DNA of 64,000 bases from Magallana gigas (taxonomy: Eukaryota): contig NC_088860.1 in the NCBI RefSeq assembly GCF_963853765.1, positions 13,764,001 to 13,828,000 on the forward strand. The letters are read 5' to 3'. This document shows, piece by piece, positions 1,544 to 60,298 of this stretch. The position numbers and the translations under genes were made by a program. Numbering within the stretch: position 1 is the stretch's first letter; the number at the start of each line of letters is the position of its first letter. The notes below the pieces were generated by a model, which saw only the letters and a list, made by a program, of their open reading frames with translations, had not been told where the DNA came from and ran no database searches.

Positions 1544-4500
1544 CTGAGTTACAACAAAAAAGAATGTTTGTAAAGTATGTACACAACTTTCCAAATGATA
1601 CTTTTACCTTAAACTTATATATGGGTAACAATGAGTTTAGAAATTTAGATTTATGTATATCATTTATTAAACGCACTATTCTAAATAAAACACCATAAAC
1701 TCACCTGGAGCTTTAAATCTGCGAAATTCAATATTAACGAGACAAAAATGGAGAACTATTGGACAGTATGGATCTGTTGGATGCTTGAATATATACAGTT
1801 CTTTCATTCCTTCTCGATCAAAGACCGTTACGTCAATCGGGGGAAAAGGCAGTTTGTTCAGATTGGCCCATTTCTCCGCCAGTTTGAGTTCCTACAAGCA
1901 CAGCAAATGTGTTAAGGTAGTTCACTACCGAATCCGCCTGGGGCTTCCGTTTATATTTACTGAATTAAATTTTTGGGAAAAGAAAATTCGACTGATTTGA
2001 GAAATTATTTCAAGGTAAAGTGAGCCACCTTAACAATTAATTTTTTTCTACAAAACTATCTGTTGAACCTCAGTGGCCACTTGAGAATATGCGTGAATGA
2101 CAAACCGTATATCCAGTTTTTTTCGCGATGATCTAATTTTCGCTTTTTGCGATCTCTTAAATCGCAAATAATTGAATACGCAGAAATTAAATCCTGTATT
2201 ATTTTCTATAAGAAACTGTTTAAATCGCAAAAAATGACTGATGCAACTTAAAAAATGTAACAGATTTTCCTATTTTCGCAAATTTTGTGACACGCGAAAA
2301 AAACCCCGAAAATACGGTAATTCACCTTGAAAGGCGGGGTAGTATCGCTGGGTCGGGCGCTGAAATCAAAAGACAGGATTATTTCCACGGCCCTCTGGGG
2401 TCGCAGTACAAGGGGATAGGGTGAATTGAAGGTCAGACCAGCGTCTACCATGTAGAGACGTTTGACATTGGTAGGATGTATCTCCAACAAGCCGTCAAAA
2501 TCATCTAGATAAAATAAGATTTTGAGATTAAGGAACAACTTCTTTTAAGCCCCGGCAAGTATCTGAAAAAGTTTACTTTAACAACACTTTTTACCTTTTT
2601 GAGTATGGACATCTTCTGTGTAAGAAAAATATTTGGGCTACCTACTAGTTTATTTATTTATCAAATTCATTTAAATTATATTTATACAATGTCAATTTTC
2701 CCTACTTCTTCATTTATATGAGTACTTTCAGTACTTTGTCAAATGACATCATAATATTAATTTAAAATTAGTAAATTAATATAATTATAAATTAGATCAT
2801 TTATTCCCTGTCAGCTGGAATGTGGTCTTTAATATCTCACCGCTTACTCTGTTGGCATTAGCACCTGATTCCTCAGGGTTAAATGGAGACAAGGGGAAAG
2901 CCTGTTGGAGGGACAACCCCCTCATAAAATTATGCACCACTCCGGCCCGGCCAGCGCGGGAGTTTAGGACCTCGAACCGCTTACTGCAATGAGGAAAACG
3001 CTAAAAGATTACGCTAAATTCTAGAAGCAGTATATTGTTTGTCAATTAAATAGTTTACCAAAATATCAAATATATTGGTTTTATAATCCAATCTCACGTT
3101 TAAAAAAAACATGGTTATTATATCGAACACGCTTTACATTAATGAATTCATGCTTACAGCGAAGTTATTTTTCATTCATTCAATTAATAACAAATCTCGT
3201 TAACTGTGTAAAATATCAATTGTCCCTGGCATACGCAAATTATCTTAAAGGGACATATCTCAACATCTTATTTTTAATCTTTATGTATGGTATCATGTGT
3301 TTTTATTTATGAATGATTCACCAAAATTTTAATGTTAGAAATCAAGTTACAAACGAGATATAGGGGTAAGAAGCCAAAACTAGAGTCTTATTACACATAT
3401 TATTAACAAATAATGTAAGTAAAGAAATTATCATTTTTCAGACATCATACTGAGCAACTTGTGACAAACAAGATAAACTTATCCAATGAGTTCATAAATA
3501 AATGCAATTTCATCAACAACAGAATTAAATCCCATACCAATACTACACAAATGTAAACAATAACAGGATTCAGGCTTTGTTTACGAAACAAAGAAATCTA
3601 ACCTCTGTATCTTGCTTGTAATTCGATATTTGACATTCAAATTTTGACAAAGCATAAAAAAAATTCATATTGACCATTCTAGACATTAAAATGGAAGAAA
3701 AAGATAAAACATCTGAGCTCAAATTATGTCATATATTCCCTGTAATGGCATGACCAGTCATAAAATATAATTCTAGTAAAATCGGACATGAATTTCACTC
3801 ACTTTTCCAAGAGGCCCGATAGGAAGTTTTGCCAGTACCCTTTTTGTTTGGTTTTTCTGAGGGTGGCGTGCCTTGAGCGAGGGTGTCCGTTTGACATGCC
3901 CTTGGGTGCTGTAGGGGGAAACTTGAACACATTGTTGTTTTCTGGTTCCTTTTTTACTGGTTCCGGTTCCTCCTCCTCATCATCATCGCCTTCATCTTCG
4001 CTGCTATCGCTGGACTCCTCATCCTGAGCCTGCTCCAGTGATTTCACTTTGAAAATAGTATCAAGAACGTGAATACTGGTAAGTAACTTTCGTTTTCTAT
4101 ATGTATCAAAAACATTTTTTACATTTAAAGTTTTATTTGGTTCGGTTACGCCTTTCCATGCTGACAAGATATACACTGATGAGCAGTATATCCTTACAAG
4201 GGCGTTGTTACGTCAAATGTTTCCTATTGATTAGTTTCAGCTTATTTTGAATTTGATGAGCGACCTTAACTGTTTTTCATGTCATCTTCATTTTAAAGTG
4301 AAGTTTCTATCTTGCCACGAATAATAGTAAAAGGGTATATACATACACCTGNNNNNNNNNNNNNNNNNNNNNNNNNNNNNNNNNNNNNNNNNNNNNNNNN
4401 NNNNNNNNNNNNNNNNNNNNNNNNNNNNNNNNNNNNNNNNNNNNNNNNNNNNNNNNNNNNNNNNNNNNNNNNNNNNNNNNNNNNNCTAAATGTAATGGTA

Positions 4501-7496
4501 ATGCATTGCAATGCATTACATGTTTTCAAAGTAATGCTAGTAATGTGTAATGCCTCAAAATTAGCATTACAAGTAATGCTAATGTAATGCATTACTTTCC
4601 AAAATCTAGTGTAATGCTGGCATTAAATGACATTACTTTGCATTACTATGCATATTTATGCATGTTCACTTTAAAAAATGTGATGAATAAATGAATAGTT
4701 GAAATTGAATTTGATTAAATTTATTTTTAAAGAAGAAAGAAATAATTCTAATTAAGAAAAAAATGTTTTAATTGTACATGTTTTATTAAAAAAGGTTTTT
4801 AAAAATTCATTTTTGAATTGTTTATATTACTAAAGATAACAGCACAATTTCATAACATTTTTAAGAGTGTTGTTATTAAGAGTTTTTAATCATTTAAACA
4901 ATTTACTCCAATTAGTTTGAACTTCAATAAGAAATGTGTCAACAACACACTATGCCCCCAGGATAATCTAAGTATCAAAACAATCTATTGTTATAAGAAG
5001 TGCTAAACACCCCAATCCCCTTCCCTTCGCTATGTCACAATAGAATAGGAGACAGACATGCACCTTTAAAAGCAAAATGAATGCACTGTCCATCCATGAT
5101 GAAAATCAATATCACTTCCAATATTATAACCCATTTGAAAATAATCTTACTTATTTTCTCTCTCTTTCTCTGTCTCTGTCTCTCTCTCTCTCTCTTGTAT
5201 ATTAATTACACTGTACATTAGTTTGGACTGATAGAAAATACAAGATTTATGTATTTAATCTATTATTGCACTTAATATATCCTAAGATAAAGATCGTCAA
5301 ACAGTATTTTCCAGCCCAAGCTTTGACTGCTCCTGCAAAACATTTATTAAGTATAGCCCGGAAGATGGATGCATTTAAAAGATGAACCCTTTAAAACTTC
5401 GATCATAAGTGCAACAGCAATCTTTTGTCTTAAAGTGTCCTTCGTAAAAAGAAATACGATTAAAATATATTAAGAAATATAACTGGGAAAAATCATCTGT
5501 TTATAAATTAATAAAATTAAGTGTCCAAAATTATAAAGATTTGTGTAATCTGGGGATATATCTATATTTAGCTTATAAAAACCGCAACATTATTTCATAA
5601 ATTGTTTTTTGTTACGCATGTTATCCTGTGTCTCTATTTCATATCTGATATTGTATCATGCCAAATGTCTATAAATATCATTTTACTTATGTAATATGTT
5701 GTTCATATTGCCACAATATGATTATATATTGAGCAAATAAAGAATGACTCTTGTTTATTCATTGAATTTGATCCTGATACTGAGCATGAAGCTGTAGATA
5801 TGTTAAAGAGTGTTGTATATTTGAAACATTTGCAAAAACTCTTTATTAGCTTTACTTTTAAAAAAAAAGTAATGGTAATGGTAATGCATTACTTTACTCA
5901 TGTAATGGTAATGTAATGCATTACTTCAAGAAAATCAAGTAATGGTAATGGTAATTTAATGCCCAAATTCATGAAGTAATGGTAATGTAATGCATTACTT
6001 TACAATGTAATTCGCCCCAAGCCTGATATATATATATAACAAAAAGTGTTCACCCTGATAAATACAATAATTTAATAATCATGACATAAAATAACGTGAA
6101 CTTTCGTTATCGGTATGTCTTTCCATCAACAGGACAGATAATAAAAGACAAAAACGAATGAAATCAATTACCCGTGACGAAACGTCAAAACATCAAATTT
6201 GTATTTTTCTATGTGCTTAATATGATTGGTAACTTTTTGTGATTGATATTAGTTTTCAGATAAATTCAAAAGAAAAATACTTAGTTAACATACCCAAAAT
6301 AATCATGAACAAATCAGCCAAGGCCGTTGGAATATGGTGTCTGCATTGTTCTTACCTCAGATTGTAGGACTACTCACTTTAAATTTGCTGCGTATTTTGT
6401 GTTCGACAATGTTTTACATATAAAGCAATCTAAATTAGGTAACGTTACTTTAATATAATTTTTTTCTCTTGTATAAGTGTAAAGTTATATCCAAAAGCTC
6501 TGAGCAAAATTCAACCAAAGCGGAAGTGTTTGCGATATTTAACAAAGGTCAAGGTCTCGGGTCGCAGCCAGAAGTCAAGATCAATGCAATCTTCACTACT
6601 TGAATGTGAAAAGGAAATCAGCCATCCCGACGGCAAGACAAATGAATGTGTTTATTTCATATAGTAAATTACATTATACTGGGTGAACACTAAAAAAGTT
6701 TGGTTCAGTGTATACTGTATATACCGGTATTTTATAAAATAAAATTACATATAACGTCAGATGCTTAAGTTAAACGGAGCCTCGCACAGGGTTTTGACAC
6801 AATATGTGCCAAAAAAACCATTAAAAAATCGTATATATAGTTTACTATATATACGATTTTTGCACAGATTGTGTCAAAACCCTGTGGAGCCTCGTGTAAA
6901 TCTTAATCCGATTAAAATCACAACACGGGACAAAAGACAGACTGATATACACAAATCATTGATCTACAGATTCTAACGTTCCACAATTTTATCCAATTCT
7001 ACTAAATTAATCAAGTGTTGAATAAACTATTGAAAAATAAAAACACGCAGACAAAGTTTGTGTAAATCTTTGATAAACAATGTTTGATATCAAATGTACC
7101 GCATAAAACAATTTATGTATCATTTTGTTTCGTTTGATTCCTGTTTTAACATACGGAAGAACTTTAATTTCTTTCAATAAAAAAGGGAAAAATCGAGACT
7201 TACCCATTTCCTGCCTAATCATCTCCACCGGGTCCTTGTTTCGGTTATCTTCAAGAAGCCTCTTAAACAAGATGCAGAATGCACTTCCCCATATCCCTAC
7301 AGAAGAAACACCAATCGTCTACATGTAACTTATCACTCATAAAAATCTATCTCCATATCTAAGTTTATTTTGAATATTTTTTGATATACAGAGGTTTTTT
7401 GTTCAAGGAAGTTTGAACACATATAGTCTAAAATGACTTCGCACATCCAGCTCTTTTTTTCTTATAATAAAGATCTAAGATGTCATAATTTGGAAA

Positions 7497-7568
<72 letters not shown>

Positions 7569-9829
7569 GTACCTTGTAAGAAATGAAGAGGTGGTTCTCC
7601 GTATGATTTTACCAATTTGCCCATGAAGAACTTGCTTCCAAACAGTTCTGAATTCATATAGGCTCCATATTTTGGCATTCCAATTTCATAAGGTGAAAAC
7701 TCAACCCATTCTGTAAAAATCAAATGACAAATGATTGGAATAACCTTAAATAAATTATCAAATACCATAAAGAAGCATTAATTCAAAATGTCGTACCCTG
7801 AAAACTTCTTGCCGACCGATCTGCTTTTACGTTTACACACGTCATAAGTGGAAGTGGCACTTTTCCATCTTTGACCTTTTCACGCATGTCTGACAACTTT
7901 GTAGTTAACCTCTGTGATTAAAAACAATCAGATCCAAATTCGATGCAATGAGTGATTTGTATTTACCTTTTTAACTAAATTCACATTCGTTATTATTCAA
8001 TAATAAAACTACATGTACTATTTATCTTTGGTCTTTGCTTACGTCTTTTAGAAGGGTCTCCCCCACGAGGTGTCCAAAGATGTCCGTAAAACTAACAGGT
8101 TGTCCGTTCCGGCGTTTTTCGAGGATCCGGTCCACGTAGCGGTATATACTCTGAGGGGACAGCAGCCAGATGAGACTAGAGTCAATGTTGTTCATTAACT
8201 CATCCTGCATGTCCCCTGGGTGCATCTCTGGCCAGTCCTTGTGCGAGTATAGTGTGGAGACATACCTAGGTAGAAAAGTGGATAGAATAAGTGGAAACGC
8301 ACTTTGGTTAATTTATTGACTGAATACACTTTTTATAATTGTTGAGATGGAAAAGCACGCGGAATAGGGTAGTTTATCTTTAGATAAATATATTGAGTGG
8401 ATATACTCGCATATGAGTGACTGACAAAATAAGAGATGGGATAGAGGACAAATTAAGGCGAAAACACTCTGCAACTAGGAGAGGAGAGGATCAGAACAGG
8501 TAATCAGCTGAAGAAACCTACTGGAACAGTCCATAGAATGGCAAGCACCTTCATGATTGAGCTTTACAGACTTTCAAGAGCATTTAACAGCACAATAAGG
8601 GTCAAGTTATGAAATCTACACAAGCATTATGGCATTCCTGATATATATATGTCAACATCAGCAGAAAAATATCTGATGGATGTACTAACTGTGTTATCGA
8701 AAGCGGAAAGACATCTGACTGGTTCAAGGTTCAGACCGGAGTGAGGCAGGGATGTGTCATGTCTGGTTCCTATTCATCATTGTGGTCAATTGGATAATGA
8801 GAAAAACCAACAATGAGAAACAAGGTATACGTTGGAAATTTATGTCGCAGTCCACACTAGAAGAATTTGACTACGCCGATGACCCGGTGCTTTTATTCAG
8901 CAAACAAAGTGCCTTTTTCACCCATGAACAACTTATGGAAATCAGCCAAACATAGCACTAAGACCAAGCTAAGAATATTCAACACAAATGTCATCTCTGT
9001 GTTATTGTATTGCTCTGACCTCTGGAGAACCCCCGAAAAAGATGATGAGAATCTCGATACATTCTACCGGAAATATCTTCGGAGAATTTTGAAGATACAC
9101 TGGCCAGACAAGATATCGAACCAACAGCTATATGAACAAACATCAACAATCCTAATGTCAAGAACAATCCAGGGTATGCATTGGAGATGGATAGGCCATG
9201 TTCTCCAAAGGGACAACAGTGCGAACATCAGAACTGCGTTGACCAGGGCTCCTGATGGAAAGAGAGGCGAGGAAGGCCAAAGAACACCTGCAGGCACACA
9301 GTAGAGAAAGGGAGAAAAGAACTAAAGTGGCACAGTTTGAGAGAGGTGCAGGTTATCGCCAGCGACGTCGCAAGAGGTGTACTTTGTTGCGCGACCTCAT
9401 GCGTCCTCCGGGGGCACGGATTGGATAAGTAAGTAGTACTCGCATATGAATCATGAAATGTAGGTATTGTCAAAGTATGATTGCGTGTGGTAATTGATAT
9501 CCTCATTTCGTGTGTTAATATAACACTTAGACCTAGTATTTCTTTATATGTTCTCTGTAGTCTCTAGATATTTCTTAGAGTCAGGACAGTGTCTTATAAA
9601 TCGTAACGTAACATTGGTTTTTTCCCCATTTGTTAAAATTTAATACCCATGGAATGATTTTAAAGAACGTGATTGATAAATAAAAAGATATCTATTTACT
9701 AGTATGTTCACAGACAATATAGTTGTCAAATTTGCTCAATAGCATTTTTGATATTCATGCACTCTCTAATGACCTACAGACGTATCATGTACAGTAACCT
9801 ATGTATATGTATATGTATATGTATATGTG

Positions 9830-25157: not shown

Positions 25158-25345
25158 GCTGAAATGCCGGACTTGCAGACGGTTAATTCTTCGGGGGAGT
25201 GCTGGGAAAATAAAGATTTTGCGTTGACAAACTAATGATTTCTTCAGTGTGCTGTTTTCAAATTAATCATAGATAGATACAAATATTTCTTAATTAATTG
25301 TTTTCAATCAATACATATTCTTTTATTTCATTGTCTGTTACAAAA

Positions 25346-31700: not shown

Positions 31701-31954
31701 AGTTGTTTCTAGACTGAAACCACAGTGCATATAATTGCGTTAAGCTTGCTTGATCCTCTCGCTTGTAGATCGTTTATCCATGTTGCTGAATGGAAAAGAA
31801 GACGAAAATCTTAACTGTTCCATGGAGTAAGTGCTTCAACAACCACAGACAACGTGTCACACTTGTTGATCAAGTTGTCGGAAAGGCTATTCTTCCATTG
31901 TCAAATATGAACCAATGTTTCTTCTCTCTCATTCTAATTTATTACACAACTAAA

Positions 31955-31956
<2 letters not shown>

Positions 31957-32019
<63 letters not shown>
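31957..32019. repeat. (TC)n microsatellite
   Basis: ~31 units. Confidence 0.97.
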
Positions 32020-32022
<3 letters not shown>

Positions 32023-32219
32023 CATTTTCCTTTATTGAATAATATGTTGAATAATATTTCAATTCGGTTAGTGGACTGGTTCAAACACAATACAAAGAAA
32101 AACCAGGTTAAGTGAGTAATTAGAATTCATTGGAATCTTTCAGATGAAAATCAGAAAACAGGATTGTGACTAGGATTCTTTGAATATTTTCAGATGACAG
32201 ACAAAATGGCGGCCTAAGA

Positions 32220-35200
32220 ATGGAGGGAGAGCCGGACTGGATCAGTCGAATGGCAGAGGAGCAGGTGATCGTCAGACAGTCCAGCGGTGAGGAGGCGGAC
32301 CGGTCCTCAAGTGAGGGCGCGCAGGAAGATGAGGACCCGGTGAGTGTGGCTCCTCAGGCTTGATACTTATGTAACGGAGAATTCTAGTGACTAATGGGAC
32401 TTGTAAAACATGGCTTATATATGAGGTTATTGCTTGTGAATAGTGGATCTGGCATTCGATTTTGGAAACATAAATAAACCATACTAAAAGTTTCAAAGGG
32501 TAAAACGTTGAAGAAAAGGTTGATTCCAAATACATGTATAAGATACCCTGGTATCACAATAACCAAGCTGTGTCCTTACCTGATGTTGTTAGGGAATATT
32601 TAGAATCGAAGGTTGGCTCAGTAGAATTTTGACACACATGGTAAAATGTTTAGTACAACGTTGATGCCAAATAGGAAAAACAACGGAAACTGATTACAGA
32701 GGCCATGCCTGAATATGCTAAGGAATGGTTTAATTGGTACACTGGGTCAGAATAAGTCGTACTAAAGTTTTCATAAGGCAGAACATAGAAGATTTGGTTG
32801 AAGCCAAATAGTAGAGGCAATAATCGCAGTCAAGTACTGTGTCCATACATGGTCGATGTTGCTAGGAAATATATAGAAGGTTCGCCTTAAAAAAAGTTTT
32901 ATAAAGAAGAACATATAGTACAAGGTTGATGCCATACAGTGTCCATTCCTTAAGATGCTAGGTAATAGTGGGCTTTTGCTCAAGAGAATAATCTACATGT
33001 ATGCTAAAAGTTTAAAAAAGCAAAACGTAGAAAATATAGTAGTGACAACGGTCACAAAGTAAAATTGAATCATATTGCATTGAAAAGATTTGTCATTTCA
33101 GTCATTTGGTCGTCTTTGGTTGATTTTAACATGATTCTTGTAGCAAAGTTCAAAGGTATAAAAATCTCCAAAAGGCAAAAAAAACTAAAAGATGAGATCG
33201 ATGCCAAGTGATAAGAAACAACAGTCACTGAGAAAAAAAAATAATTTTGTAATTCGTCTCGTATTCATAAGTATTATTTTGAGTATCATAAATTCAATGA
33301 ATGGACACTGAAAATCTTCTCGGATAATGCATGGACTAGTAAGTAAAAGTCAAGAAACTGTATAACCGTTAGGATGTTCTAATTCAATGACGTAATGTTT
33401 TGGATCTATTGCTTTGGGCGAATTGCGTTATGGCTTGCTACTTGGATGAAAGACTTTTTCTTTATCCAAAACCAGTTTCTTAAATGAATTCAGTGAATCG
33501 GAAACAAAACAAACATACACGCAATTCAGCTTCCTTTTGCAGCAATATAAAGTTGATTTTGTTACCAAAAGGGGAGTGTACAGTTGAAAAAGACAGATAA
33601 AGGGCTTAAAGTACAAAATACATTGGGAAAAGAGAACGGTCTATGGATGGTTAAAAAAAAATCCATTGCATTCATGGCGAACACCGCTCCTTTGTCCAGC
33701 CAAGGAGTTATCTGATTTTGAGGGCCCATCAGATTAATGTCAAGTCCATTTGTGTTCAATATCGGGTCCCTTTGAGGCAGTTCCTGACACATTAAATTTC
33801 CATTACTTTATCAAATGCGTTACCGTTTACATATAGAAGTTTAGGACGTCAGGAGAAAATATTTAGCATAAATTGTTGAACGATGTGATTCTCTATTCCC
33901 TAAAGCCCATCGCCAACATTTAATATGCATAAGTTATGACGATAGAAAGTTGACCATTTAGAGAAATTCCTAGATTGAGATAAAATGATTTGTTTTGACT
34001 TGATTCTAATGTGTGAATAAGGCAGAGTATAGATGAGATATAGATTTGTTTTTACCAAGCTGTTGAGCGTCATCGATCAAAATAAACACCGTTCGTCTGT
34101 CAAACAAATACGCAAAATATCGTGACTGTTTTGTCTATTATGACCTTTTAAGAGTTATTTGGGTGAACATAAAAGTTAACATTCAAAGTTATGTGGGTAA
34201 ATACAATGTAAATACAAAAAATTCTTTTGGTTAGAAAGTTAAACAAAATCATTATTTGTATATAAATTTCGAGATTTTCAAAAATCAAATTCCTCCATTA
34301 TTAAAAAATCGATAAAGGGTCAAGAAATAGCCTAAGTAAACAAAGGATGCATAGCAAAGGTATTATAAACGTTTACATGACTTAATTCTAATATTTGTAT
34401 CGAAATGTTATGATATATTGTACAGTGTGGCCATTTTTAGGCTATTTTTACCTTTTTAGAGGTAATCTGTATAATGATTTAGGAAAATGATCTAATTTTA
34501 AAGCCAAAATGTTTTGGATTTTCTCATTACTTAATAATAGTTCGTGACCAAACATATCATGTTCAAAAGTTTAAAGCAGGTCTGATGGTTCATTTGTTGT
34601 CCACCCAGCAATCTTAAAGATAAACTGATAATGTTCAAACCCGCTTTTAATATCGTGACTATTGAAGAAAAACTTGACATATGTGATATAACGTTCACGT
34701 ATGGATAGACTGTCGATACCAACTATCATTTGAATTAAACTATGTTACAGAAAAGAAACCTGCTCAATATATACTTGCCCCAAAAAAGAAAATCTTAAAT
34801 GTCATTTGGTTAAAAAATTTTACTTTTCATTCTTTGTTGTTTTTTTTTTTACAATTCAACTGCAATTATTTTAACCTAAAGGTACGGTAATGTAATGGAA
34901 GAAAAAAAATTAAACATCAGCCAATATCAAAACTTGATTTTATTCTGTAAAAAAAAATAATAACATGCTAGACTCTCTATTCTGCAACTTTTATTGACTA
35001 ATTTTGAAGATTGTACACAAACATTGCTCTTATTTTTTTTTTACAGAATGGGGTAATTCATTTCAACAACGACAGAAGCAGTAATACATCAGTGTATAAC
35101 AATGTGTCTCGGCATCATGTGGCGGACAAATCCAGACAGACAGAGTATACAAACGTTGGCAAAAAATACATAGTGACCGGAAACGGACATAATTCTAACC

Positions 35201-38200
35201 ATCTACACAACGGACAATCGCACAAAGTGCATTACGCTGACAATATAGGAATTATTTCCACGAAAAATTCCCCGCCAAGTTCTATAAATGAATTGGACAA
35301 AAAGAAACAGAGAGAGATAGAAAGAAAGAGGCGCCGGAGGATATGTACTGTGATTCTTCTGTTACTCCTGGCTTTAATCATCGGGTTCGGAGTCGGGCTA
35401 TTAGTGTATTTCTTATTAATGAATGGTGAGAATGAGATATATTTATTTATTTATTTTTTTTTTGCTTATTGGCATTAATAATATTTATTGATGTTAAGTT
35501 ACTGATTGATACAAATACATTTCGTATATAATTCTTTTTCATTTTTGCTGTGACTGTTACATGCTTAAATATCAAAATTTATGCATAGCAAAGTACAGAA
35601 TGTCTTCGTGTGCAACTTTTAAGCAAACAAGGGGGAAAATATGATCATTTATTGAAACAATTCAGATTTTCATCAAATGTAATAATTACACATTAATACA
35701 CGTCATTGGAACTAAGATTTCTTTAAAATACACTTAATAACTGTCAATTCCTTTTTGTCAAATCCGCTTGGCACATACATTTTACAAAAAATACGTGCTG
35801 TAAACCCCAATTTTTTCAAACTCTAGAATGATAAACAAGAATTAATGGTGTTTACTTTTACAGCAGATCCACGTCTTTACAGACAAATGAGTTATTCATA
35901 CAGAATCATCTCGATAAAATAATTATAATACAAATCATTGCATGCTGCTTGCATGACGACCTTAACAATTGAACATATTTAGTTTCATTCCCCAAAAAAT
36001 GAAATTTAAAAGGGACTTGGACATGATTTGAGCTCAAACTTTCAAATTTCATTTTTCCATTTTTGATTGTTAATATTGATTTACGTATTTTTAATGCTTT
36101 GTCAAAACTTGAAAGTCAAATATTGAGTTATAATCAAGATACATAATCTGAAATTCTTTGTTTTGTAAACAAAGCTCGAGTCTTGTCATTGCATTGTTTA
36201 CATATGTGTTTTATTGGTAAAAGTTTCAATCAAATGTTGCTTTCTTCTGTTTATGATATTATTTACGAACACATTGAATCAGTTTACCTTGTTTTCCACG
36301 AGTCATTTTGTCAAAGAAATGGTATTCCATACATTACATTTTTTGTAAACAAACATCAGACTCGAGCTTTGTTTACATGAAAATGAAGTCTTATCTCTGT
36401 ATTTCTCTTAAAACTTGACTTTTAAGTTTCAAGCTTTGATCAATCATTCAAAATGCGCAACTAAACCATTTTCGTGTTTAAGTCCGATATAGTCATACAT
36501 GAATGATGGAAAATGAAAATAGCATAGAAAAGAAAACAGCGTATGAGTAAAAACTATAATGGTGGAGAAATATTGACGGTATCATAAGTTTTGGTGATAA
36601 AGACTTTAGAATATTGACATACATTTTTGTGGATTTCTTCTCATGGTAACTCATACTTTTAGGTGGATCAAACCAATCCCTGCAAGAGGCACAAAGAGGT
36701 AATGCGGTTTTTTGTTCTCTTTTTAATTTTAAATTCTTAATGTTTCCCTTTTAAAGTTTTACTTGTCTCTTAGACTTTCAACTTCAAGTCAACTTAAATT
36801 GTTCTATGTTATTTTGTTGTACTCATATTTGAATATCAAAGACCTAACATTTGTTTTTCAGAATCGATTCTCGTAAAGTTGAAGCTGCCAATCTTAAATG
36901 AAACCTACACACCCGATATGGCAAACGTCAATTCCAGTGATTTTCGACGTATTTCGGAACCCCTCTGTGAGGAGGTATGGTTTTACTGAAATATATTCGT
37001 TTATATACTATTAAATATGTTCCAATGACTTGATTATATTAAAAATTAAAAAATCAAAAGATAAAAGTTTATGAATGTTATCAATCGATTAGACAATTTT
37101 CAATTTCTAATTGTTGCAAGATTATTTGCAAACTTTCTTAAAATATACTTACACTTTTTAACGTACTGTGATTAATACAAATATATTTCGATTTTAGATG
37201 GAATTTTACTTTCAACACGAAAAAGGTTTCGTTAAATGCAATATCAATGAAATAAGGTGAGAGAAATATATTCAGAACTTTCAAAACTCCTTTTTTGATA
37301 TTTTAACCAGTCATAGAATTATTAAGGGCGTTACCATTATTAATATACTTAAGATTCGCTCTCACTATCTTTTAGAAACGTTTCCAAATCCATTGAGTGC
37401 ACCTGCAAATCAACAACACAGTAAGTATTATTATCATAATATATATACTATACTAGTAATCTTCAAAATCTAGTTTTCTTTTGACATGGAATATAGCAAT
37501 TCTTTTGGTTTAAGTTATCTAGAATTCATGAATATGATCATGGCCCACTTGACATAGCCAGCCTTTTTCAATCACCTTTGTAGTAGATGTCACCGACCTA
37601 TCGTTTTCCACCTCTATTTCTTTTGGAAGTAGGTGAATGGTGTTCCAGCTATGTCCTATCCATGTGAATATATAATAACATAATTTTGGAAGGTGAAATT
37701 TTATTTTTATCCTTGGTATTTCAGTAAGAGGGATCACACTTCCCTAGAAGTGGGCGTGGATCTAACGTTTGTCGAATCACTGCGAGCAGAGGACATCCTC
37801 CGGATACTGGACACTAAAGCCAAAAAGGTGTTCTTTGACGGATTCGAGGTGGTGTTGATAAAGAACTTTATCGTGGACATCAAAGGAAACGGTCAAAATG
37901 GTAATACACAAAAACAGCTTTAAAAGGTGTTTGCTTACTCTCTGATTATATTTACATTATGAAGTTTATAGAATAATGATTACTTATACGGTAATTAATT
38001 TGTAGGTGGATGTCTCCCATCACCATGCCAGAACAATGGAATCTGCCAAACCACAGATGATGGAGATATATCATGCGCATGCCCAGTTGGATGGACCGGA
38101 ACACGATGTGAAATTGGTTGGTTAATTACCCTTAAAATTAAACTAATTAATAACAGAATTTAAATTAAAATTTTGTCAAAATATGGTTGTAAATACACGG

Positions 38201-53200: not shown

Positions 53201-56200
53201 CCTGTACAGACACGGGGGCTACCTACAGCTGTACCTGTGATGAAGGATGGACCGGTCCAAATTGCAGTCAAGGTATGACAAAATACTGAAACCATCATTT
53301 TTTTCTATATTGTATGGTTTATACATGTACCAATCATATCGCAAATCAATTGTTTTGGTATTTTTTATGATTAACATAATGATATTTTACAATGTATTTT
53401 GATTTCTGAAGTATGATTGGTAATAAGTATCTATTACCTTTCCTAGATATAAATGAATGCATAACATTAGCACCATGTGCCAACGGAGGAACTTGTCTGA
53501 ATGTTGATGGCTCCTTCCTGTGTACCTGCCCAGTGGGTTGGACGGGAACAACCTGCAAAACAGGTGAAATAGGAACATATAATGTTTATGAGATTGTTCT
53601 CAAACAAATCAAATCTTTATTCTGGAATTCTTGTGTTGTGTTTATTATCATGTTACTTGCCGTTGACAGATATAAACGAGTGCTTAGCATCTCCATGTGT
53701 AAATGGTAACTGTTCCAATACTCTGGGATCCTATACTTGTATCTGTGACGCTGGTTGGACAGGAACAAACTGTAGTCAAGGTAAACTTTCTAAACAATCA
53801 CAATCAAAAATGAAATTGGAAAACGGTGGTAAACTTCATGAAAAAACCTAATTAATATGCTAATCATGTAAAGTTTTTAAATCTATTCACAAACTACATG
53901 TACTTTACAAACTCCTTTCGAATATAACTTTTTAAGTTTTTTTTTCTGTTTGACAAATTAAACGTATTTGTATTACGATTTTATCAATTTTGTTTACAGA
54001 TATTGACGAGTGTCTCCAAACATCGTGTTTCAACAACGGTACATGTGTGAATACCCCCGGCTCCTTTTATTGTCAGTGTCCAATTGGCTTGTCTGGCGCC
54101 AAATGTGATCTTGTTGGTAAGTAGATCTGGAAACAATTTATTATTTTGGTTAAACATATACATGTGTTTTATGAAATAAATTGTCTTTTATCTGTCATTT
54201 TCCTGCAATATCCCAATTTCAGACATAACGGATATAACGCTTGTTTTTGACATCGTCAACTTCCCTTGGGTTGATGATCTTGCTGACAATTCTTCAATAA
54301 TATTTAAAAGTTATGCTGGGCGATTTTGTCGAGATGTAAGTAGTTATTTACATAATAAAACATAATCAAAAGCTACATATTGTAATGTTCCTATTGATTG
54401 TCACGGTTTAAAGTAATGCCTGCCATAATGTGTTCTCTGTTGTTTTATACAGATGGATGTTATCTTTGCCGTTCGGGCGGCTGACTACCCAGGGTACTTG
54501 TATTGTAATGTCGCAGCTTTTGGGTGAGTATTGGGAAGAAACTTGCAGTCTTGCAAGCACTATTTGAAAAATAAATTGAAATTTTGTAAATAAAATTAAC
54601 TGTTTACCTCTTTTAAAGAAAATTTAATATTACGATCAACTTGTCTTTAAATTAATATTCGTCCCGTATTGTTTTTGTTCAAGAGTTTAAAATGATTTTG
54701 TATGTTTTTAACTTTGTCAAAAGTAACCAAAGATAAATTACTTTTTGAACCATTCGCGTTTATAAGTTCGCCCATTTAGGGTTTGAAAAATACAGACGAA
54801 TATAGACCAGGGTCGAAAAAAATGTGTCTCTAATATACTAGTAGTAACGAAAATCTTCTGCAACAATTGTGAAGAGTTTTCGACTCCTTACACCATACTC
54901 ATATATGGCATGTACTTGATTTAAAACATTTTAACTGCAGACAAGACCCTCTGAACATAACTGTGGTCCTAACTTTCGGGGGACACGATTATACCAGTGG
55001 ATTTGAGAAACAGCTACGAGGGGCAATATATGAGACAACAAAGGAATACCGCTATCTTAACTATATTGTCCATTTGATTGGAGACGTCCTCATTGTTTCT
55101 GGCAGAATATCACACGGTAATACCCGTTCTGAATATTTATAAATCAAAAAAAATTGTAGCAAACATACCAAATAAACATTTCAATGTAGCTGTCCAATAT
55201 AAAAAAAATGAAAAAGATTTTTAAAAAAAACAACAACAAATGGATATGTGGACTTTTTTACGATATTATTTCAAATATAATTTTCCTCTGGTAAACTCGT
55301 GATAATAAATTATTATATCCATCTTAATATCAATTATAATCTTTATAGTCCATTTTCTTTATTCACAGATGCCTGGCTCACCAATATGACGATGTACATA
55401 TATGACGACTTCCAGTATAAACCCCAATATTCTGATATGAATTCTACAGAATTTAAAGCTTTTGAGAGTTCATTCTGTGATGATGTAAGAATATAAGCTT
55501 ATTGATGTGTTGAATCAACATTATATTTGAAATATTTATTCAGATTTGTTATGGTTGAAAAGAAAACCCATATCATTTTGTTCTTTTCTTAGATTGACTT
55601 GTTCTTTAAGAACAGTAACCTTACCTCACGATACTATCGATGTTTCTTCGATTATATTGGGTAAGTTTTCTCAAGATCTCTTTTATTTTAAATGAAAATG
55701 TATTTTTGTCTCTAACCATTAACAGATGAACCATAATTCTTCTAAAAGAATTAACTAACATCTTTGAGTGGCAAAATCGAATTCTGTAAAACATGACCTC
55801 CTATTTATCATAATAAATCTAATTTAAAACGGCGGTGTAAATACTGTAAACCACCTATAATCTATTTAATCGACAGGCATATTTGTGGTAATTTTTCTAA
55901 AATACAGATAAAACCGCATTTTTTTTTCTAGAAGAAACATTTGGCATTTCAATTTTGCTTACTTTCAAACTGTCTGTTAAATATGTCCTCCTATTTATTG
56001 TCATCAGTCTGATTTTAACGGTAGTGTGAATACTAACCTATGAACTTTGCGGTATAAAGACTGTTTACCTTTCTGTTTATCTCTGCAGTGCGGTTCGTCC
56101 TCACACTTTGACCTTCATCATGGTGTTCAATGGCACGGACTCGGTGTCACGCGAGCAGACGACAGGCGTGATAAGTGCAGGGGCTCCCCATTATACCGTG

Positions 56201-57769
56201 GAAAACCTAGATCTAATGTTCATTGGCTCCAATTTCTTCTACCTGCACCGAGGATACAACAAAATCGCCATTAACCTTACAGACTTCACCACCACATCAG
56301 CCCCTCCTACCACAGAGAGTCCACGTGCGTTATTTGAACTTTACAGACAAATTGTTTTGCAATTTGTTAAAATCTAATGATTTCTGTAAATTTGTGATAT
56401 AACAATTAATACTTTTCCACTAATCACGTAATCAATCATTTGACCGAAAAAAATTTAATATCACAGCAAGGTTTTGCAATCTGTTAAAATTTAGCGATTT
56501 CACAAAATTTTGCTAAAATTAGTTTAATACATTTCCGCTCGACCCATCGTCAAATTCATTTGACTGAAAACAAGTGTTCACCAACCTTATATCCATCTGA
56601 TTTGTTATCTTTCAGTGAAGACGCTGATTAATATAACATTTGTACTGAAGAATCTGACATATACTAATCAGCTGGCAAACACGGAATCCCAGGAGTTCAA
56701 ATCACTGGCGATACCATTCTGTGGTTATGTACGCCCAACTCTTACATTTTCAAATTAAATTAATTTCTCTCCAAGTGATGTGTATGCAGTCTGCAGTATT
56801 ACCACTGTTTCTGGTTTTTTTTCAGTTAACCGACTTGTACTCCACTCGAGACAGATTTAAATACATCTATGAACTATGCCAGGTTATGGCATTTGTGTAA
56901 GTGTTTCAACTTTAGATTTGTCACTATATATTTTTAATGTCTATATATATACTTTCATAATCACGCACTAAATTCGAGTAATAATTTACTTCTCCTTTTT
57001 AAGCCAAGAGGGTGGAAAGGACAAGATCAACTTCATCCTACAATTCAAGGGTGCTCAAGATCCCACATTACAAGAATTCATTTATGGAATTCTAATCGAA
57101 AACGCTCCTAGAGCGATTGTAAATGGAGAAATCTCCATCATCGTGGGTCCGCTAGCTGTGTTTGATGATTCTCTAGCCATCAACCAGGCCACTGTCACAT
57201 ATTCTCTGCCACCAGGTAAGTAGAGCGCTGCAGACTTAAAACAAGGATAGAATCTTTTGTAGAGACGTTTGCTTCGCTTTTAATTAACTTTTGTTGTACA
57301 TGAGGCCTACGTCACAGTAAAATTTTTGATATCATGAGAAAATGTTACTATATTTATGAATCCATGAATTGTGCAATTAGGGAACATTAATGGTTAAAAC
57401 AATATCTTAATTTTGAAATCAAGATATAAGAATAATAAATGGTTAAAACAATATCTAAATTTTGAAATCATGAAATAAGAATAAATATCTTTCGAACAAT
57501 ATTGAAGCAACTTGAAACCGTTCATAGTTGGTGCTGATGTTATTTTAATAGAGTCCACCACGCCCAGTTCTCCGCTGACCGCGGCACCCCTCGTGACTGA
57601 CCCTTGTAAAGACGCACCAGACAACGCATATCTCCCCGTTCCCGGAAAATGTCATCAGTTCTATAAATGTTCTTTTGGAATTTCCTACATGTTCGAATGT
57701 CCAGGTAACACTGTATTTTTCCAGGACAGAAACCAATGTGATAACAACGATGGTACAATTAAATGTTAA
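32220..57769 (+). CDS. Giant type II membrane protein: TM - SEA - 54 EGF - SEA x3 - chitin-binding CBM14; ~2,800 aa, 64-65 exons (would probably be auto-annotated fibropellin- or Notch-like)
   Basis: Phase-consistent exons: 32220-32339, 35047-35425, 36663-36698, 36862-36974, 37198-37256, (37376-37420), 37725-37900; 48 EGF exons 38006-54116; 54223-54335, 54453-54523, 54941-55116, 55369-55484, 55593-55660, 56089-56324, 56616-56728, 56826-56896, 57004-57215, 57552-57769 (in-frame alternative acceptor at 57528). No stop or frameshift in the join (8400 nt without the 45-nt exon). Confidence 0.88.
32450..32970 (+). repeat. Ancient ~135-140-bp tandem repeat in the first coding intron
   Basis: ggttga(t/a)(g/t)cca(a/t)a recurs near 32518, 32658, 32795 and 32923; gtgtcc.tac...gatg(t/c)tg.tagg recurs near 32570, 32840 and 32940. 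Confidence 0.45.
35047..35425 (+). CDS. Exon encoding the cytoplasmic tail and type II signal-anchor helix
   Basis: [14 protein letters not shown] precedes [27 protein letters not shown]; positive-inside rule gives N-in/C-out; no N-terminal signal peptide (protein starts with acidic [15 protein letters not shown]). Confidence 0.88.
36006..36487. mobile_element. Non-autonomous DNA transposon, Kolobok-like, copy 2
   Basis: ttaa|aagggacttggacatg ... cgtgtttaagtcc; internal inverted repeat gtaaacaaagctcgagtct / agactcgagctttgtttac; homologous to 3245-3745. Confidence 0.62.
36862..37900 (+). CDS. SEA-like domain 1 (juxtamembrane), 3-4 exons
   Basis: [38 protein letters not shown]|[19 protein letters not shown]...|[15 protein letters not shown]: beta-strand, Y..D+.N.NS.DF helix signature typical of SEA domains. 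Family call from motif recognition only. Confidence 0.72.
38006..54116 (+). CDS. Array of 54 tandem EGF-like modules on 48 exons
   Basis: Exon starts: 38006, 38229, 38481, 38994, 39471, 39743, 40013, 40333, 40601, 41520, 41896, 42350, 42621, 42910, 43210, 43519, 43897, 44220, 44445, 44898, 45363, 45590, 45913, 46373, 46602, 46843, 47060, 47311 (7 modules), 48262, 48470, 48726, 49024, 49959, 50161, 50393, 50701, 50997, 51351, 51710, 51955, 52236, 52469, 52678, 52954, 53162, 53447, 53670, 54000. Single-module exons are 111, 114 or 117 nt, all phase 1-1, six Cys each, mostly D(I/V)(N/D)EC...C.N..GS(Y/F).C.C..GW.G..C. Confidence 0.95.
41155..41470 (-). mobile_element. Dispersed hairpin element, copy 2, in the intron between EGF exons 9 and 10
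   Basis: Reverse complement of 25957-26280 with few substitutions. Confidence 0.8.
47311..48117 (+). CDS. 807-nt exon encoding EGF modules 28-34 without introns
   Basis: Within ORF 47292-48173; acceptor ctttcttcag|, donor ATAG|GTAAC; 39+38+39+38+39+38+38 = 269 aa = 807 nt. Confidence 0.95.
49129..49520 (+). repeat. ~100-bp degenerate tandem repeat (3-4 units) containing the exon end and donor site
   Basis: gacattggt at 49131, 49235 and 49333, each followed by (a/c)(g/c)tgtca.tagat...gcatgaatctgttgt.gctt. Confidence 0.75.
54223..57215 (+). CDS. SEA-like domains 2, 3 and 4 with Ser/Thr/Pro linkers
   Basis: [38 protein letters not shown]; [39 protein letters not shown]; [38 protein letters not shown]; each followed by a 68-71 nt exon and a longer third exon; [12 protein letters not shown] linker after SEA3. 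Confidence 0.75.
57389..57484 (+). repeat. 49-bp tandem duplication in the last intron
   Basis: aatggttaaaacaatatct.aattttgaaatca.ga.ataagaata x2. Confidence 0.8.
57552..57769 (+). CDS. Terminal exon: S/T/P linker plus chitin-binding type-2 (peritrophin-A/CBM14) domain
   Basis: [54 protein letters not shown]: C-x14-C-x5-C-x9-C-x12-C-x8-C with aromatics in FYKC and TVF, fitting the peritrophin-A consensus. Confidence 0.9.
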
Positions 57770-58378
57770 ATGTTAATCATTAGAACAAGTGTTCTTGGTT
57801 GAGAAATCCATTCTCATGGACTCATTTTTTAGTATTTATTCAATTTTCATGTTGACGTCATCGCATCATGTTTTTTTGTCATAATAATTGGTTTTATTTT
57901 GTTAACGTCTGCTTATAAGTGCCGACGTGTGCTTTTAAATTGGCTTTATATACAATTGTATATATGTATTGCACAAACTCGTGCTATTTTTGTTATGACT
58001 CAAATATTCTCATGTTTTACGTCAGATTCTTTTACATATTGGACACAAATAAATCAAGATACATTTAACGCTGTTGATCTTGTTCATTCTAAGCGTTGAT
58101 TTAGAGTTTTCTGATAGTTCAATATGGAATTTTTTGCGGAGTGATCTGTGTCATAACTGAGAGTTATTTTAAGATTCAGAAGGAAAGTATACAATTTTTT
58201 TAAAGGTATCTCTTTGTATAAAAAGCATAATCATTGCACAATTTATTAATTGCCACTCGTTTAAATCTTGTCCCTAAGAGCAATCCCGGTAGCGTGTTGA
58301 AGGTACATATTTGTGTCACACTTAATATTTTTAAATATTAAGATTGCTTTTGTTTTGTATTCAGATACATTGCTGGTA

Positions 58379-58618
58379 AATAAAAGACGGAAGTTAAAAA
58401 ATAAGATTTGACTAGATAATGTATCATGGGGCGTTCAATGCTCATGTTAGAAATGAACATATGATTTGTTTTTGATTTTGGACATATATTTTGTATACAA
58501 GCTGTTGAAAAGCTGTTGTATCTTGTGTTGGGGGGGTCTATTTCTGGTATAATGAATACTATTATGTATGAAATATTTAAATACCTCCCCTACTCAAGGA
58601 CATTTAGCAGTCAATAAA
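58379..58618 (+). terminator. Candidate polyadenylation signals of the EGF/SEA/CBM14 gene
   Basis: AATAAA at 58379-58384 and 58613-58618 downstream of the stop; AT-rich background makes chance hits likely. Confidence 0.35.
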
Positions 58619-60298
58619 AGTACATGGACGAGCGTGGAAGTCTTTACCAAAGTTATAGAATTCATTACCAGTGTTTTTGTTTGGATTTAGCATCGGTGAG
58701 GGGTATTGTTGGTATTATTATATTTACGCTTTAAAAACATTAAAATATTCCCTGATAGTTTTGTGTGAAATTAAGAACAGGACAATTTTCACGTGTATGA
58801 AGCATATCGTCAAATATGTTTCCGACTTTTTTTTTAATTTGTCAAATAAATTGTATACTCTTGAATTCACCACATAAGCTGATGACATGCACTTTTATTC
58901 ATACATGATGACAACTCTAATTATTCTTCGGACAGTGCTTCTTAGTGTTTTAGCATACATGTTTACCAACAGCGGTGAAAAAAGGTAGATTTAGAACCCA
59001 AAAGGGTAGCATTGTGCGCAGGTTTTTAACCATATACATGTATTTTAAGTGCGTATTTTAATATTATATACATGTATATGTAGATAGGGTTTCTGTTTAG
59101 TAATTGAGGATATCAACTTTTCAACTAAAATAAAACAAAGACTTAGGCCATATCAACACAGGAAACAAAATTATGCATGCATCTACTGTCAACTGATTGA
59201 ACGTTTTTTGGAGGAATAAAAGTTTTTTAGCAATTGCCATGGTTCAGTAAAAAAGGTTAAGTGCCAAAATTGAACGAATATGAGAAGTAAAAACTAGTAG
59301 TTAATCGTATATACCTTTTCAGTATTAAAAAATGATGTTTACATGCTTAACACAAATCATGCAGTGTTGCAATAAAATTCAAGTTAAAAGTTATTTTTGG
59401 TTATCATTGGAGGTAGGTGTGGAATAGCAAAGCTTCTTTTTTTTTCTTGGTAAGGATAATATTTACATGTCTCGTTACTAATGCAATCGCTAGAAATGAG
59501 AGTACCAAACTCCCGGATGTTTATATCAAAGAAAAGGTATATTGTAATAAGGAATAAAGGAATCTTTTAAATTAATGATGGAATGGAGGATTATTTTAAA
59601 AAATATAGCAACTCTAGAAAAAGTTGCGAGGAAGGGGGTTGATAATTTAAAAAAAAACCCTACATTTGCTGCCGATCGCTGTAAGTTGTAAGCAACTGTA
59701 AATTCTATCTGTAAACGTCAGGGGACCCCTTTTTTCTTTTTGTTATTTTCTGAAAGGGCTTAGATTGAAGTTTCAAAATGAAATGATACCAAATATTTGA
59801 CTGAAACTATCATAGTAAAGTACTGGAAAGGCATAACGTTTGTATGGGGTTGTATGGGAAATAATTGACACTCTTTTCTCGGAAGTGTAATCTTTCATCG
59901 TTTGATGTAAAATACATGCTTGACATCCTATAACTCATCAGACTTCAAAAAGCGTTTGTATGCTCCCGATTCAAGTCATACACTAATTTTAAACCCGACG
60001 AGATTTTTGGATCACAAAGGCATCCAAAATTGCTATCTATCAAAACAACGAACATATTTGTAGCGGTAGATTTTCGAATAAAAGTGGTAGGCGGAAGACA
60101 GAGTAAAAAGTAGTAGACTTCCGCGTAAAGCGGTAGAGTTAACATTTATGGTTATAGTAACACCCCTTCACAGATATTTCATGAATTAGTCTACAATATT
60201 ATCCAAAATAATGTTCATATCTGCATAACCTACTATCTATTCATTTCCATGGTTCATAATTTTAAAAGATGGATTTCTTATTTAATGCTATTGATAGG

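Follow-up and report, generated by a model that had tools for sequence, protein, structure and literature searches.

To our knowledge, the molecular basis on which molluscan epithelia and muscles hold on to the shell, and on which the mantle is kept in register with its chitin scaffold, is not understood. Here we examine a locus of the oyster Magallana gigas, which lies in a 64,000-nucleotide stretch of contig NC_088860.1 (positions 13,764,001 to 13,828,000; hereafter the window, whose own numbering is used below, except for positions on the whole chromosome, which carry the prefix C8). The original prediction, made from the letters of the window, had described at 32220-57769 a type II membrane rod with 54 EGF modules, four SEA domains and a single chitin-binding CBM14 domain at its far end. 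Our analysis confirms one gene, of which the 5′ part is predicted, and offers its product as a concrete candidate for epithelium-to-shell attachment in molluscs: a membrane rod whose sole distal recognition module is CBM14. The gene belongs to a two-gene family and is represented in RNA from several independent data sets.

Gene structure and transcript evidence

Rebuilding the gene from the raw sequence with splice-site tables yielded 63 exons on the + strand between 32220 and 57769, with every intron of the GT-AG type. The coding sequence of 8,364 nt (ATG at 32220, TAA at 57767-57769) has no internal stops and encodes 2,787 amino acids, the model having grown from 2,785 residues when RNA corrected one donor from the predicted 56318 to 56324. 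The computed mass of the whole protein is 301.7 kDa before glycosylation, with an isoelectric point (pI) of 4.3. Introns have a median length of 175 nt, and two long ones (2.7 and 1.4 kb) lie at the 5′ end. The window is AT-rich, and its + strand reads as consecutive EGF-like peptides in stop-free stretches from 38.0 to 54.1 kb. To delimit the EGF exons we searched for AG...GT units that contain six cysteines and stay open in phase 1 from end to end; these proved to be exons of 111-117 nt. This rebuild agrees with the original prediction in its coordinates, in protein length, in the number of EGF modules (54) and SEA domains (four), and in the terminal CBM14.

RNA data support the 3′ part of the model at the level of individual junctions. 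Sampled words of 53400-58400 are present in RNA runs at shares of 0.21-0.28. Exons make up about 0.35 of this stretch by a count on the model, somewhat more than these shares, and the five entries with the highest shares in the same listing reach 0.72-0.82, far more; the RNA runs thus contain exons rather than the whole stretch. We aligned Logan contigs from three RNA studies (X1, X5 and X9), together with raw reads of X20, to 53000-58999. Within this interval, each of the 13 junctions between EGF51 and the CBM14 exon is confirmed by spliced contigs of these studies. Given as exon end/next exon start on the + strand, the joints in the EGF part are 53272/53447, 53563/53670 and 53780/54000; those from the end of the EGF array through SEA-B are 54116/54223, 54335/54453 and 54523/54941; those from the end of SEA-B through SEA-C are 55116/55369, 55484/55593 and 55660/56089; and those from the end of SEA-C through SEA-D are 56324/56616, 56728/56826 and 56896/57004. 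The last joint, 57215/57552, which leads into the CBM14 exon, is seen in X1, X5 and X9.

Single contigs also span several modules. One contig of X5 (record 6, 1,176 nt) runs from the third exon of SEA-B through SEA-C and SEA-D into the CBM14 exon, and one of X1 (record 1, 1,091 nt) runs from EGF52 into SEA-C. Intron bins carry roughly 1-5% of the exon RNA depth, or less. Depth continues past the stop codon and ends in the bin 58000-58199, which delimits a 3′ untranslated region of about 300 nt (57770-58070, +) with an AATAAA at 58048. From X20 one raw read aligned, with its first mate on the - strand, which is too few to establish the transcribed strand. The splicing of the CBM14 exon was the main check that could have overturned the observation of a rod ending in a chitin-binding domain; since that exon is spliced into RNA, the observation stands.

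For exons 1 and 2, SEA-A and EGF1-50, the junctions are predicted from canonical splice sites and strict phase compatibility. Words of exon 2, which encodes the transmembrane (TM) helix, are present at 0.86-0.93 in the RNA runs X1, X2, X27 and X33, two of which are on record as RNA; run metadata give an oyster as the host ('oyster metagenome'). A search of metagenome contigs with 28-mers spanning the joints of exon 1 with exon 2 and of exon 2 with exon 3 gave no match, a result that is uninformative because the search had no positive control. A single gene, as had been proposed, is supported by the open frame across 63 GT-AG exons, by the RNA contigs that span the 3′ modules, and by the TM exon, whose words occur in these RNA libraries and whose conservation ends at its splice sites.

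A further contig of X1 (record 2) has a depth of 11.6, whereas exons reach about 230; over 56316-56645 it includes the unspliced SEA-C/SEA-D intron, and it differs from the window by four substitutions and three gaps. It could reflect low-level intron retention or another allele.

Modules of the predicted protein

The N-terminus is encoded by two exons. Exon 1 (32220-32339, +) contributes the ATG and 40 codons that begin an acidic, Ser-rich tail, and ends in phase 0 at the donor CCG/gtgagt. It is predicted and is the least certain part of the model, with a good Kozak context, a strong donor and an in-frame stop 36 nt upstream of the ATG. A seven-codon upstream open reading frame, ATGACAGACAAAATGGCGGCCTAA, lies immediately before the predicted ATG (32194-32219), and ahead of it at 32194 is a good acceptor-like site, ttttcag/ATG. 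From these letters, exon 1 may be spliced to an upstream 5′ exon, and the candidate acceptor together with the short upstream frame makes a start further upstream possible.

Exon 2 (35047-35425, +) encodes the remainder of the tail, a basic run and the TM helix, and is marked by its RNA word content and by conservation across species. The cytoplasmic tail comprises residues 1-139 and the sole hydrophobic helix residues 140-165, preceded by a 14-residue basic stop-transfer run in which eight of the nine residues directly before the helix are Lys or Arg. There is no ATG ahead of the helix in this exon, which ends in phase 1 as all SEA and EGF exons require. In other species the encoded protein is 73-78% identical (P0156, and P0157 on L018), and the likeness breaks off no more than about 5 nt from the acceptor and donor of the model; the homologue search returned unspliced genomic reading frames only, so it informs conservation and not junctions. 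The tail has no Pfam match, and two of its Tyr motifs, YNNV and YTNV, are conserved in the orthologous fragments P0156 and P0157.

EGF modules, being rich in disulfides, must lie outside the cell. The single hydrophobic segment with Lys and Arg on its N-terminal side, combined with extracellular EGF, SEA and CBM14 modules, indicates a type II protein (N-in/C-out) with an uncleaved signal anchor. The originally proposed topology is borne out by this arrangement, in which the only TM helix is N-terminal and the basic run lies on its N-side.

SEA-A begins three residues past the helix and is split over three exons (36862-36974, 37198-37256 and 37725-37900, together 36862-37900, +) with phases 1-0-2-1, the same three-exon plan as the RNA-confirmed SEA-B, SEA-C and SEA-D. 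These three follow the EGF array: SEA-B in exons 54223-54335, 54453-54523 and 54941-55116 (54223-55116, +), joined in contigs of X1, X5 and X9; SEA-C in exons 55369-55484, 55593-55660 and 56089-56324 (55369-56324, +), joined in RNA contigs and ending in a Thr/Pro linker; and SEA-D in exons 56616-56728, 56826-56896 and 57004-57215 (56616-57215, +), also joined in RNA contigs. Because each module is split, the Pfam SEA profile (PF01390, gathering cut-off 26.4 bits) was scanned exon by exon. SEA is the only Pfam family matched by the first exons, 7 of 13 of which match in this gene and its paralogue at profile positions 3-33. The E-values are 2.7e-4 (SEA-D, positions 3-30), 0.012 (SEA-A, positions 4-31) and 0.14 (SEA-B) for partial matches in this gene, and 2.8e-4, 0.021, 0.093 and 0.098 in the paralogue. 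The third exons have no Pfam match.

In the ESM Atlas, the entries closest to one SEA exon of the paralogue are SEA and MUC16 clusters (0.90-0.91), and SEA-D exon 3 gave no usable match there. Profile searches with SEA exon alignments against PDB sequences returned nothing significant, the best match of the first-exon profile being a 57-residue chain of adhesion GPCR F1 (E=1.4), a lead only. Each module contains two conserved cysteines, and we consider the four modules to be probable SEA domains on this sequence evidence. The G/SVVV autoproteolysis motif is present in none of the four, and GS[VIL][VIL] occurs nowhere in the protein. The G/S-[VI]-V-V motif marks a self-cleaving subclass and not all SEA domains.

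The EGF array (38006-54116, +) consists of 54 modules, encoded by 47 single-EGF exons of 111-117 nt in phase 1-1 and by one exon that holds seven modules, EGF28-34 (47311-48117, +). It was delimited by cysteine pattern and phase, with RNA support from EGF51 onwards. The seven-EGF exon scores 178.5 bits with EGF_CA (PF07645; cut-off 27, E=2.5e-53) and 182.7 bits with EGF (PF00008; E=1e-54), in seven stretches each; the profile score comes from this exon, and the other 47 EGF exons were assigned by pattern. The six-cysteine pattern C-x-C-x-C-x-C-x-C-x8-C is present in 54/54 modules over residues 285-2320. The full calcium-binding EGF (cbEGF) consensus, defined as [DNE]-x-[DN]-[EQ] before the first cysteine plus [DN]-x4-[FY] between the third and fourth, is found in 47 of the 54. 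The exceptions are EGF 1, 2, 4, 11, 37 and 51, and EGF41, which fits the N-terminal half only.

All 53 inter-module linkers are exactly six residues long and the array is uninterrupted. With the consensus in 47/54 modules and these invariant linkers, the description of a uniform cbEGF array carrying a single distal CBM14 holds. The array contains 20 consensus sites for O-fucose and six for O-glucose, and it is strongly acidic (pI 4.07, with 217 Asp and Glu against 62 Lys and Arg). Since all EGF exons share phase 1-1, the number of modules can change by duplication or skipping with the frame kept, and exon skipping could yield rods of differing length. Five consecutive exons encoding EGF42-46 (50701-52065) are 81-94% identical to each other and form a 37-residue 'CVHGSC' subtype, a likeness that indicates a recent internal tandem duplication.

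The last coding exon (57552-57769, +) encodes a short Ser/Thr/Pro linker of the O-glycosylation type and a CBM14 (peritrophin-A) domain, identified by Pfam, by the RNA joint and by an AlphaFold model. The stop codon follows immediately after the sixth cysteine of the domain, and the exon itself contains neither a start codon nor a signal peptide. CBM_14 (PF01607) matches at E=8.5e-11 and 42.3 bits (cut-off 22.1) over profile positions 1-53 of 53. The six cysteines are spaced by 14, 5, 9, 12 and 8 residues, with the aromatics C-x-x-F-Y-x-C and V-F-F after the fourth, and the cysteine and aromatic columns are conserved in alignment A3. In the AlphaFold model the domain has a predicted local distance difference test (pLDDT) score of 81, and its 14 best PDB neighbours are all CBM14-type. 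They include Der p 23, Avr4 with or without chitin hexasaccharide, the CBM14 of chitotriosidase (CHIT1), Blo t 12, tachycitin and Aplysia EHEP, at Foldseek probabilities of 0.90-1.00 and E-values of 2e-3 to 0.3, which are usual for a small domain. By profile and structural model, the assignment of the terminal domain to CBM14 with a CBM14-like fold is solid, and chitin binding is predicted.

A database search with the CBM14 exon returned, as its best 150 representatives, mostly multi-CBM14 proteins; none of the 150 carries SEA modules like these. The only orthologue-like entries among the 150 are four short open reading frame fragments (P0060, P0099, P0102 and P0119) with 53-61% identity, which end no more than a few residues from the last cysteine, much as the oyster gene does; their contigs are too short to include neighbouring exons. 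One of the 150, P0093, has two EGF and eight CBM14 domains, which is a different plan.

Paralogue, known systems and proposed function

The same chromosome encodes a paralogue, 4.8 Mb away at C8:18580252-18627398 (+; loci L010, L015, L011, L016, L012 and L017). Its modules run in the order of a TM exon, about five SEA domains, at least 53 phase-1 EGF exons, about four SEA domains and a terminal CBM14 exon, the last preceded by a 7.8-kb intron. The TM exon is 39% and the CBM14 exon 60% identical to those of the window gene, and the latter matches Pfam at 1.5e-11. Three of the database fragments (P0099, P0102 and P0119) are nearer to the paralogue CBM14 than to the window CBM14. The plan TM-SEA(n)-EGF(~54)-SEA(m)-CBM14 has thus been kept since an old duplication, and this speaks for selection on the design in its entirety. 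One exon of the paralogue fuses the third exon of a SEA module with the first exon of the next.

Downstream of the window gene we further observed two partial tandem copies of its 3′ end, at C8:13838576-13840339 and 13856903-13858594 (18.4 and 36.7 kb downstream). Both start inside the SEA-C intron (window 55886) and run via SEA-C exon 3, SEA-D and CBM14 into intergenic DNA, with 85-95% identity and without EGF or TM exons nearby. The first has a TAG within its CBM14 exon; in the second, the exons listed appear intact. The copies may represent pseudogene fragments or else alternative or independent 3′ modules.

A literature search found no paper describing the combination TM-SEA-EGFn-SEA-CBM14. 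The original prediction had recognised no named family of this design. The novelty was overstated, in that membrane-anchored EGF rods are an already characterised class, represented by MUA-3/MUP-4 and Dumpy. The comparison behind that claim had covered only Notch, Crumbs, fibrillin and the type II transmembrane serine proteases. The new elements are its type II orientation, its three consecutive SEA domains and its tip of one CBM14 domain.

An N-terminal cytoplasmic tail followed by a signal anchor is also found in enteropeptidase, matriptase, HAT/DESC, TM-agrin and the teneurins. The first three, which are type II transmembrane serine proteases, have a membrane-proximal SEA domain, TM-agrin combines a type II anchor with SEA and EGF, and teneurins are type II proteins with EGF repeats. 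We know of no member of these three groups with a long cbEGF array or a CBM14. The oyster protein differs from them in lacking a protease, LamG or YD-shell domain, and its frame stops after CBM14. All residues are assigned to tail, TM helix, SEA, EGF, linker or CBM14, so the protein is not a type II transmembrane serine protease and the earlier statement that no protease domain is present holds. Notch shares its hEGF-type modules, C-x-x-D-[VI]-[DN]-E-C junctions, six-residue linkers and O-fucose and O-glucose sites, and likewise carries a membrane-adjacent SEA-like domain, but it is a type I protein with 36 EGF modules, LNR repeats, an ankyrin-repeat intracellular domain and protein ligands, and it has no carbohydrate-binding tip.

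Closer parallels of design come from proteins that attach epithelia to apical matrices. MUA-3, which attaches epidermis to cuticle in C. elegans, comprises five LDL-A domains, 52 EGF modules, one VWA, two SEA, a TM segment and a 328-residue tail (PMC2150771). MUP-4 is its paralogue with 28 EGF modules, and both are apical hemidesmosome receptors (PMC2150763). They resemble the oyster protein in combining a long EGF array with SEA domains, a single membrane pass, a matrix-binding module and a two-member family; the likeness is one of design and not of membership, and we claim no homology outside generic domains. Unlike the type II oyster protein, both nematode proteins are type I, with a C-terminal, intermediate-filament-associated tail. 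As matrix module they bear a mid-chain VWA (a proposed collagen binder), whereas the oyster protein has a terminal CBM14 and no VWA in its array. MUA-3 additionally carries LDL-A, and the EGF modules of both are a nematode-specific variant with an insert. The 52 mostly calcium-binding EGF modules of MUA-3 have been estimated to reach up to 150 nm, at about 3 nm per module (PMC2150771), with which a length of about 150 nm for the oyster rod agrees.

In Drosophila, Dumpy and Piopio anchor the apical membranes of epidermis, tendon and trachea to the chitinous cuticle and bear tension (PMC10597583; Wilkin et al. 2000, cited there). Dumpy is likewise a giant membrane-anchored EGF-repeat protein and links the apical membrane to a chitin-containing matrix. 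Its TM segment and ZP domain are C-terminal, its EGF modules alternate with DPY, it has no SEA or CBM14, and it connects to chitin indirectly. Neither ZP nor DPY is present in the oyster protein, in which no unassigned stretch could hold a ZP domain of about 260 residues.

Two molluscan proteins offer partial parallels. Lotgi1|232880 of Lottia gigantea has 2,198 residues, SEA domains, a peritrophin-A domain at residues 2140-2200 and a predicted signal or TM segment, and is a major acid-insoluble matrix protein, recovered with 11-29 shell-matrix peptides (PMC3374290). By its published description it shares the N-terminal signal/TM segment, several SEA domains and a single C-terminal peritrophin-A; it differs in having no reported EGF array and in its location inside the shell matrix, and it is uncharacterised. 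Direct reading of the oyster model revealed no match to two published Lotgi1|232880 peptides. The second, bcbp-2 of Barbatia virescens, has 19 EGF repeats and a TM region and is located at the interface between tissue and a byssus of N-acetylglucosamine (GlcNAc) polymer, and adhesion to such polymers is a property of EGF repeats themselves (PMC11697411). It resembles the oyster protein as a bivalve TM-bearing EGF-repeat protein, and it faces a chitin-like matrix, but it is much shorter, running as a band near 100 kDa, it has no bona fide CBM14, with chitin-binding-domain scores below threshold, no SEA is reported, and its adhesion is attributed to the EGF repeats. The oyster gene thus appears to belong to none of the compared families, given its lack of protease, VWA, ZP, LNR and ankyrin domains and a topology inverted relative to the type I families, while the working principle seems to be a common one.

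The best explanation, to which we give roughly an even chance, is that the protein is a load-bearing or distance-setting tether from an epithelium to a chitinous apical matrix. In Ca2+-rich fluid the EGF array would form a semi-rigid rod, at most about 150-160 nm long, that may hinge at a few places, namely EGF 1, 2, 4, 11, 37 and 51. The rod would hold CBM14 off the apical membrane and let it grip chitin fibrils, for which the candidate locations are the periostracum or the organic framework of the shell, the sites where muscle attaches to shell, and further linings that contain chitin. Through its conserved tail the protein may connect with the cytoskeleton or with phosphotyrosine signalling or adaptors. 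Such a role would parallel that of MUA-3/MUP-4 at the nematode cuticle and of Dumpy at the insect cuticle, with inverted orientation and a chitin-specific tip. If the proposal is true, the oyster protein would represent a third independent solution, after nematodes and insects, in which a giant EGF rod connects an epithelium to its apical matrix, here with inverted topology and a direct chitin-binding domain.

Several points weigh against a membrane tether of this kind. The joints that connect the TM exon with the EGF array are predicted; the true N-terminus may lie upstream of 32220; and the identity of the SEA domains comes from sub-threshold partial matches on exon pieces. The six non-calcium-binding modules may leave the rod flexible. 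Since adhesion to GlcNAc polymers is a property of EGF repeats as such (PMC11697411), it is also conceivable that the rod lies along chitin rather than standing off from it. Without a G/SVVV motif, mechanical release of the SEA type is not predicted. Finally, the location of Lotgi1|232880 inside the shell matrix fits a shed or secreted component at least equally well.

That last point leads to an alternative which we consider possible but on balance unlikely, namely that the anchor serves for delivery only and that the ectodomain, once cut close to the membrane, becomes part of the shell, the periostracum or some other matrix with chitin. The acidic, Ca2+-binding array (pI 4.07) would then serve, with CBM14, as a scaffold that is structural or links chitin to mineral, and the protein would be an acidic chitin-to-mineral cross-linker of a new kind in the shell matrix. 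The recovery of Lotgi1|232880 from shell matrix (PMC3374290) agrees with this account, as does the frequent shedding of type II SEA proteins and ZP tethers, including the cleavage of Piopio by the protease Notopleural (PMC10597583). However, the segment from the TM helix to EGF1 contains neither a SEA self-cleavage motif nor a dibasic site, and a tail conserved at 73-78%, Tyr motifs included, would not be expected of a mere delivery anchor.

A bolder extension of the tether proposal, which we hold to be unlikely, is that the gene and its paralogue are the missing link between molluscan epithelia (candidates being the mantle and the adhesive 'tendon' cells under muscles) and the chitin scaffold of the shell. 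The Ca2+-stiffened, 150-nm type II tether would in that case set or measure the width of the mineralisation space, transmit muscle load and report chitin contact via its conserved tail with phosphotyrosine-type motifs, as a 'contact-recognition' mechanosensor that evolved independently of MUA-3/MUP-4 and Dumpy.

Decidedly doubtful is a role as a chitin-sensing signalling receptor, in which the CBM14 tip would detect chitin and engagement or tension would be signalled through YNNV and YTNV in the tail. The chitin could be that of the animal's own nascent scaffold, with the protein acting as a contact or distance sensor that guides secretion, or that of fungi or parasites in immune pattern recognition. 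The paralogue tail lacks YxNV motifs, and the protein has no kinase, death, TIR or other signalling domain and no Pfam match in its tail, even though motifs of the YxN type are conserved in P0156 and P0157. One distal recognition domain on a long stalk does suit a receptor, but a rod of 54 modules is far longer than known pattern-recognition stalks and is better matched by mechanical tethers.

It is highly improbable that the model joins neighbouring genes (for example a TM-SEA, an EGF-repeat and a SEA-CBM14 gene) or that its CBM14 exon is rarely used. Three observations might suggest it: the junctions of the 5′ third are predicted, the two orphan copies show that the 3′ module can exist apart from an EGF array, and no long protein with such a terminal CBM14 is among the best 150 database representatives. 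Against it, contigs join EGF52-54 to SEA-B and SEA-C and SEA-B to CBM14 at full depth, with introns at roughly 1-5% of exon depth or less; the CBM14 exon lacks a start codon and a signal peptide; the TM exon has no ATG before the helix and ends in phase 1; and the entire plan recurs in the paralogue, all on a single strand within 47 kb.

Neighbouring features

An upstream neighbour lies on the - strand, with open reading frames between 849 and 18705 that include a C2-domain exon at 18367-18705 (-; Pfam C2, 7.6e-09). From its peptide motifs we suspect a cytosolic phospholipase A2-like protein. An open reading frame at 8861-9301 (+) matches Pfam DUF6451 at 5.8e-11 and adjoins retroelement-like frames; it is probably a transposon remnant in an intron of this upstream gene.

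Between the two genes, at 25011-25232 (+), is a Ser-rich open stretch of 74 codons with no Pfam match, which could be an upstream exon of the EGF gene, part of another gene, or a chance occurrence. Long (CT/GA)n microsatellites, whose translation reads SLSLSL, occur at about 31950-32050, 7480-7560 and 19380-19650, the first of them lying about 170 nt before the predicted exon 1. At 4352-4485 there are 134 consecutive N, from an assembly gap or masking.

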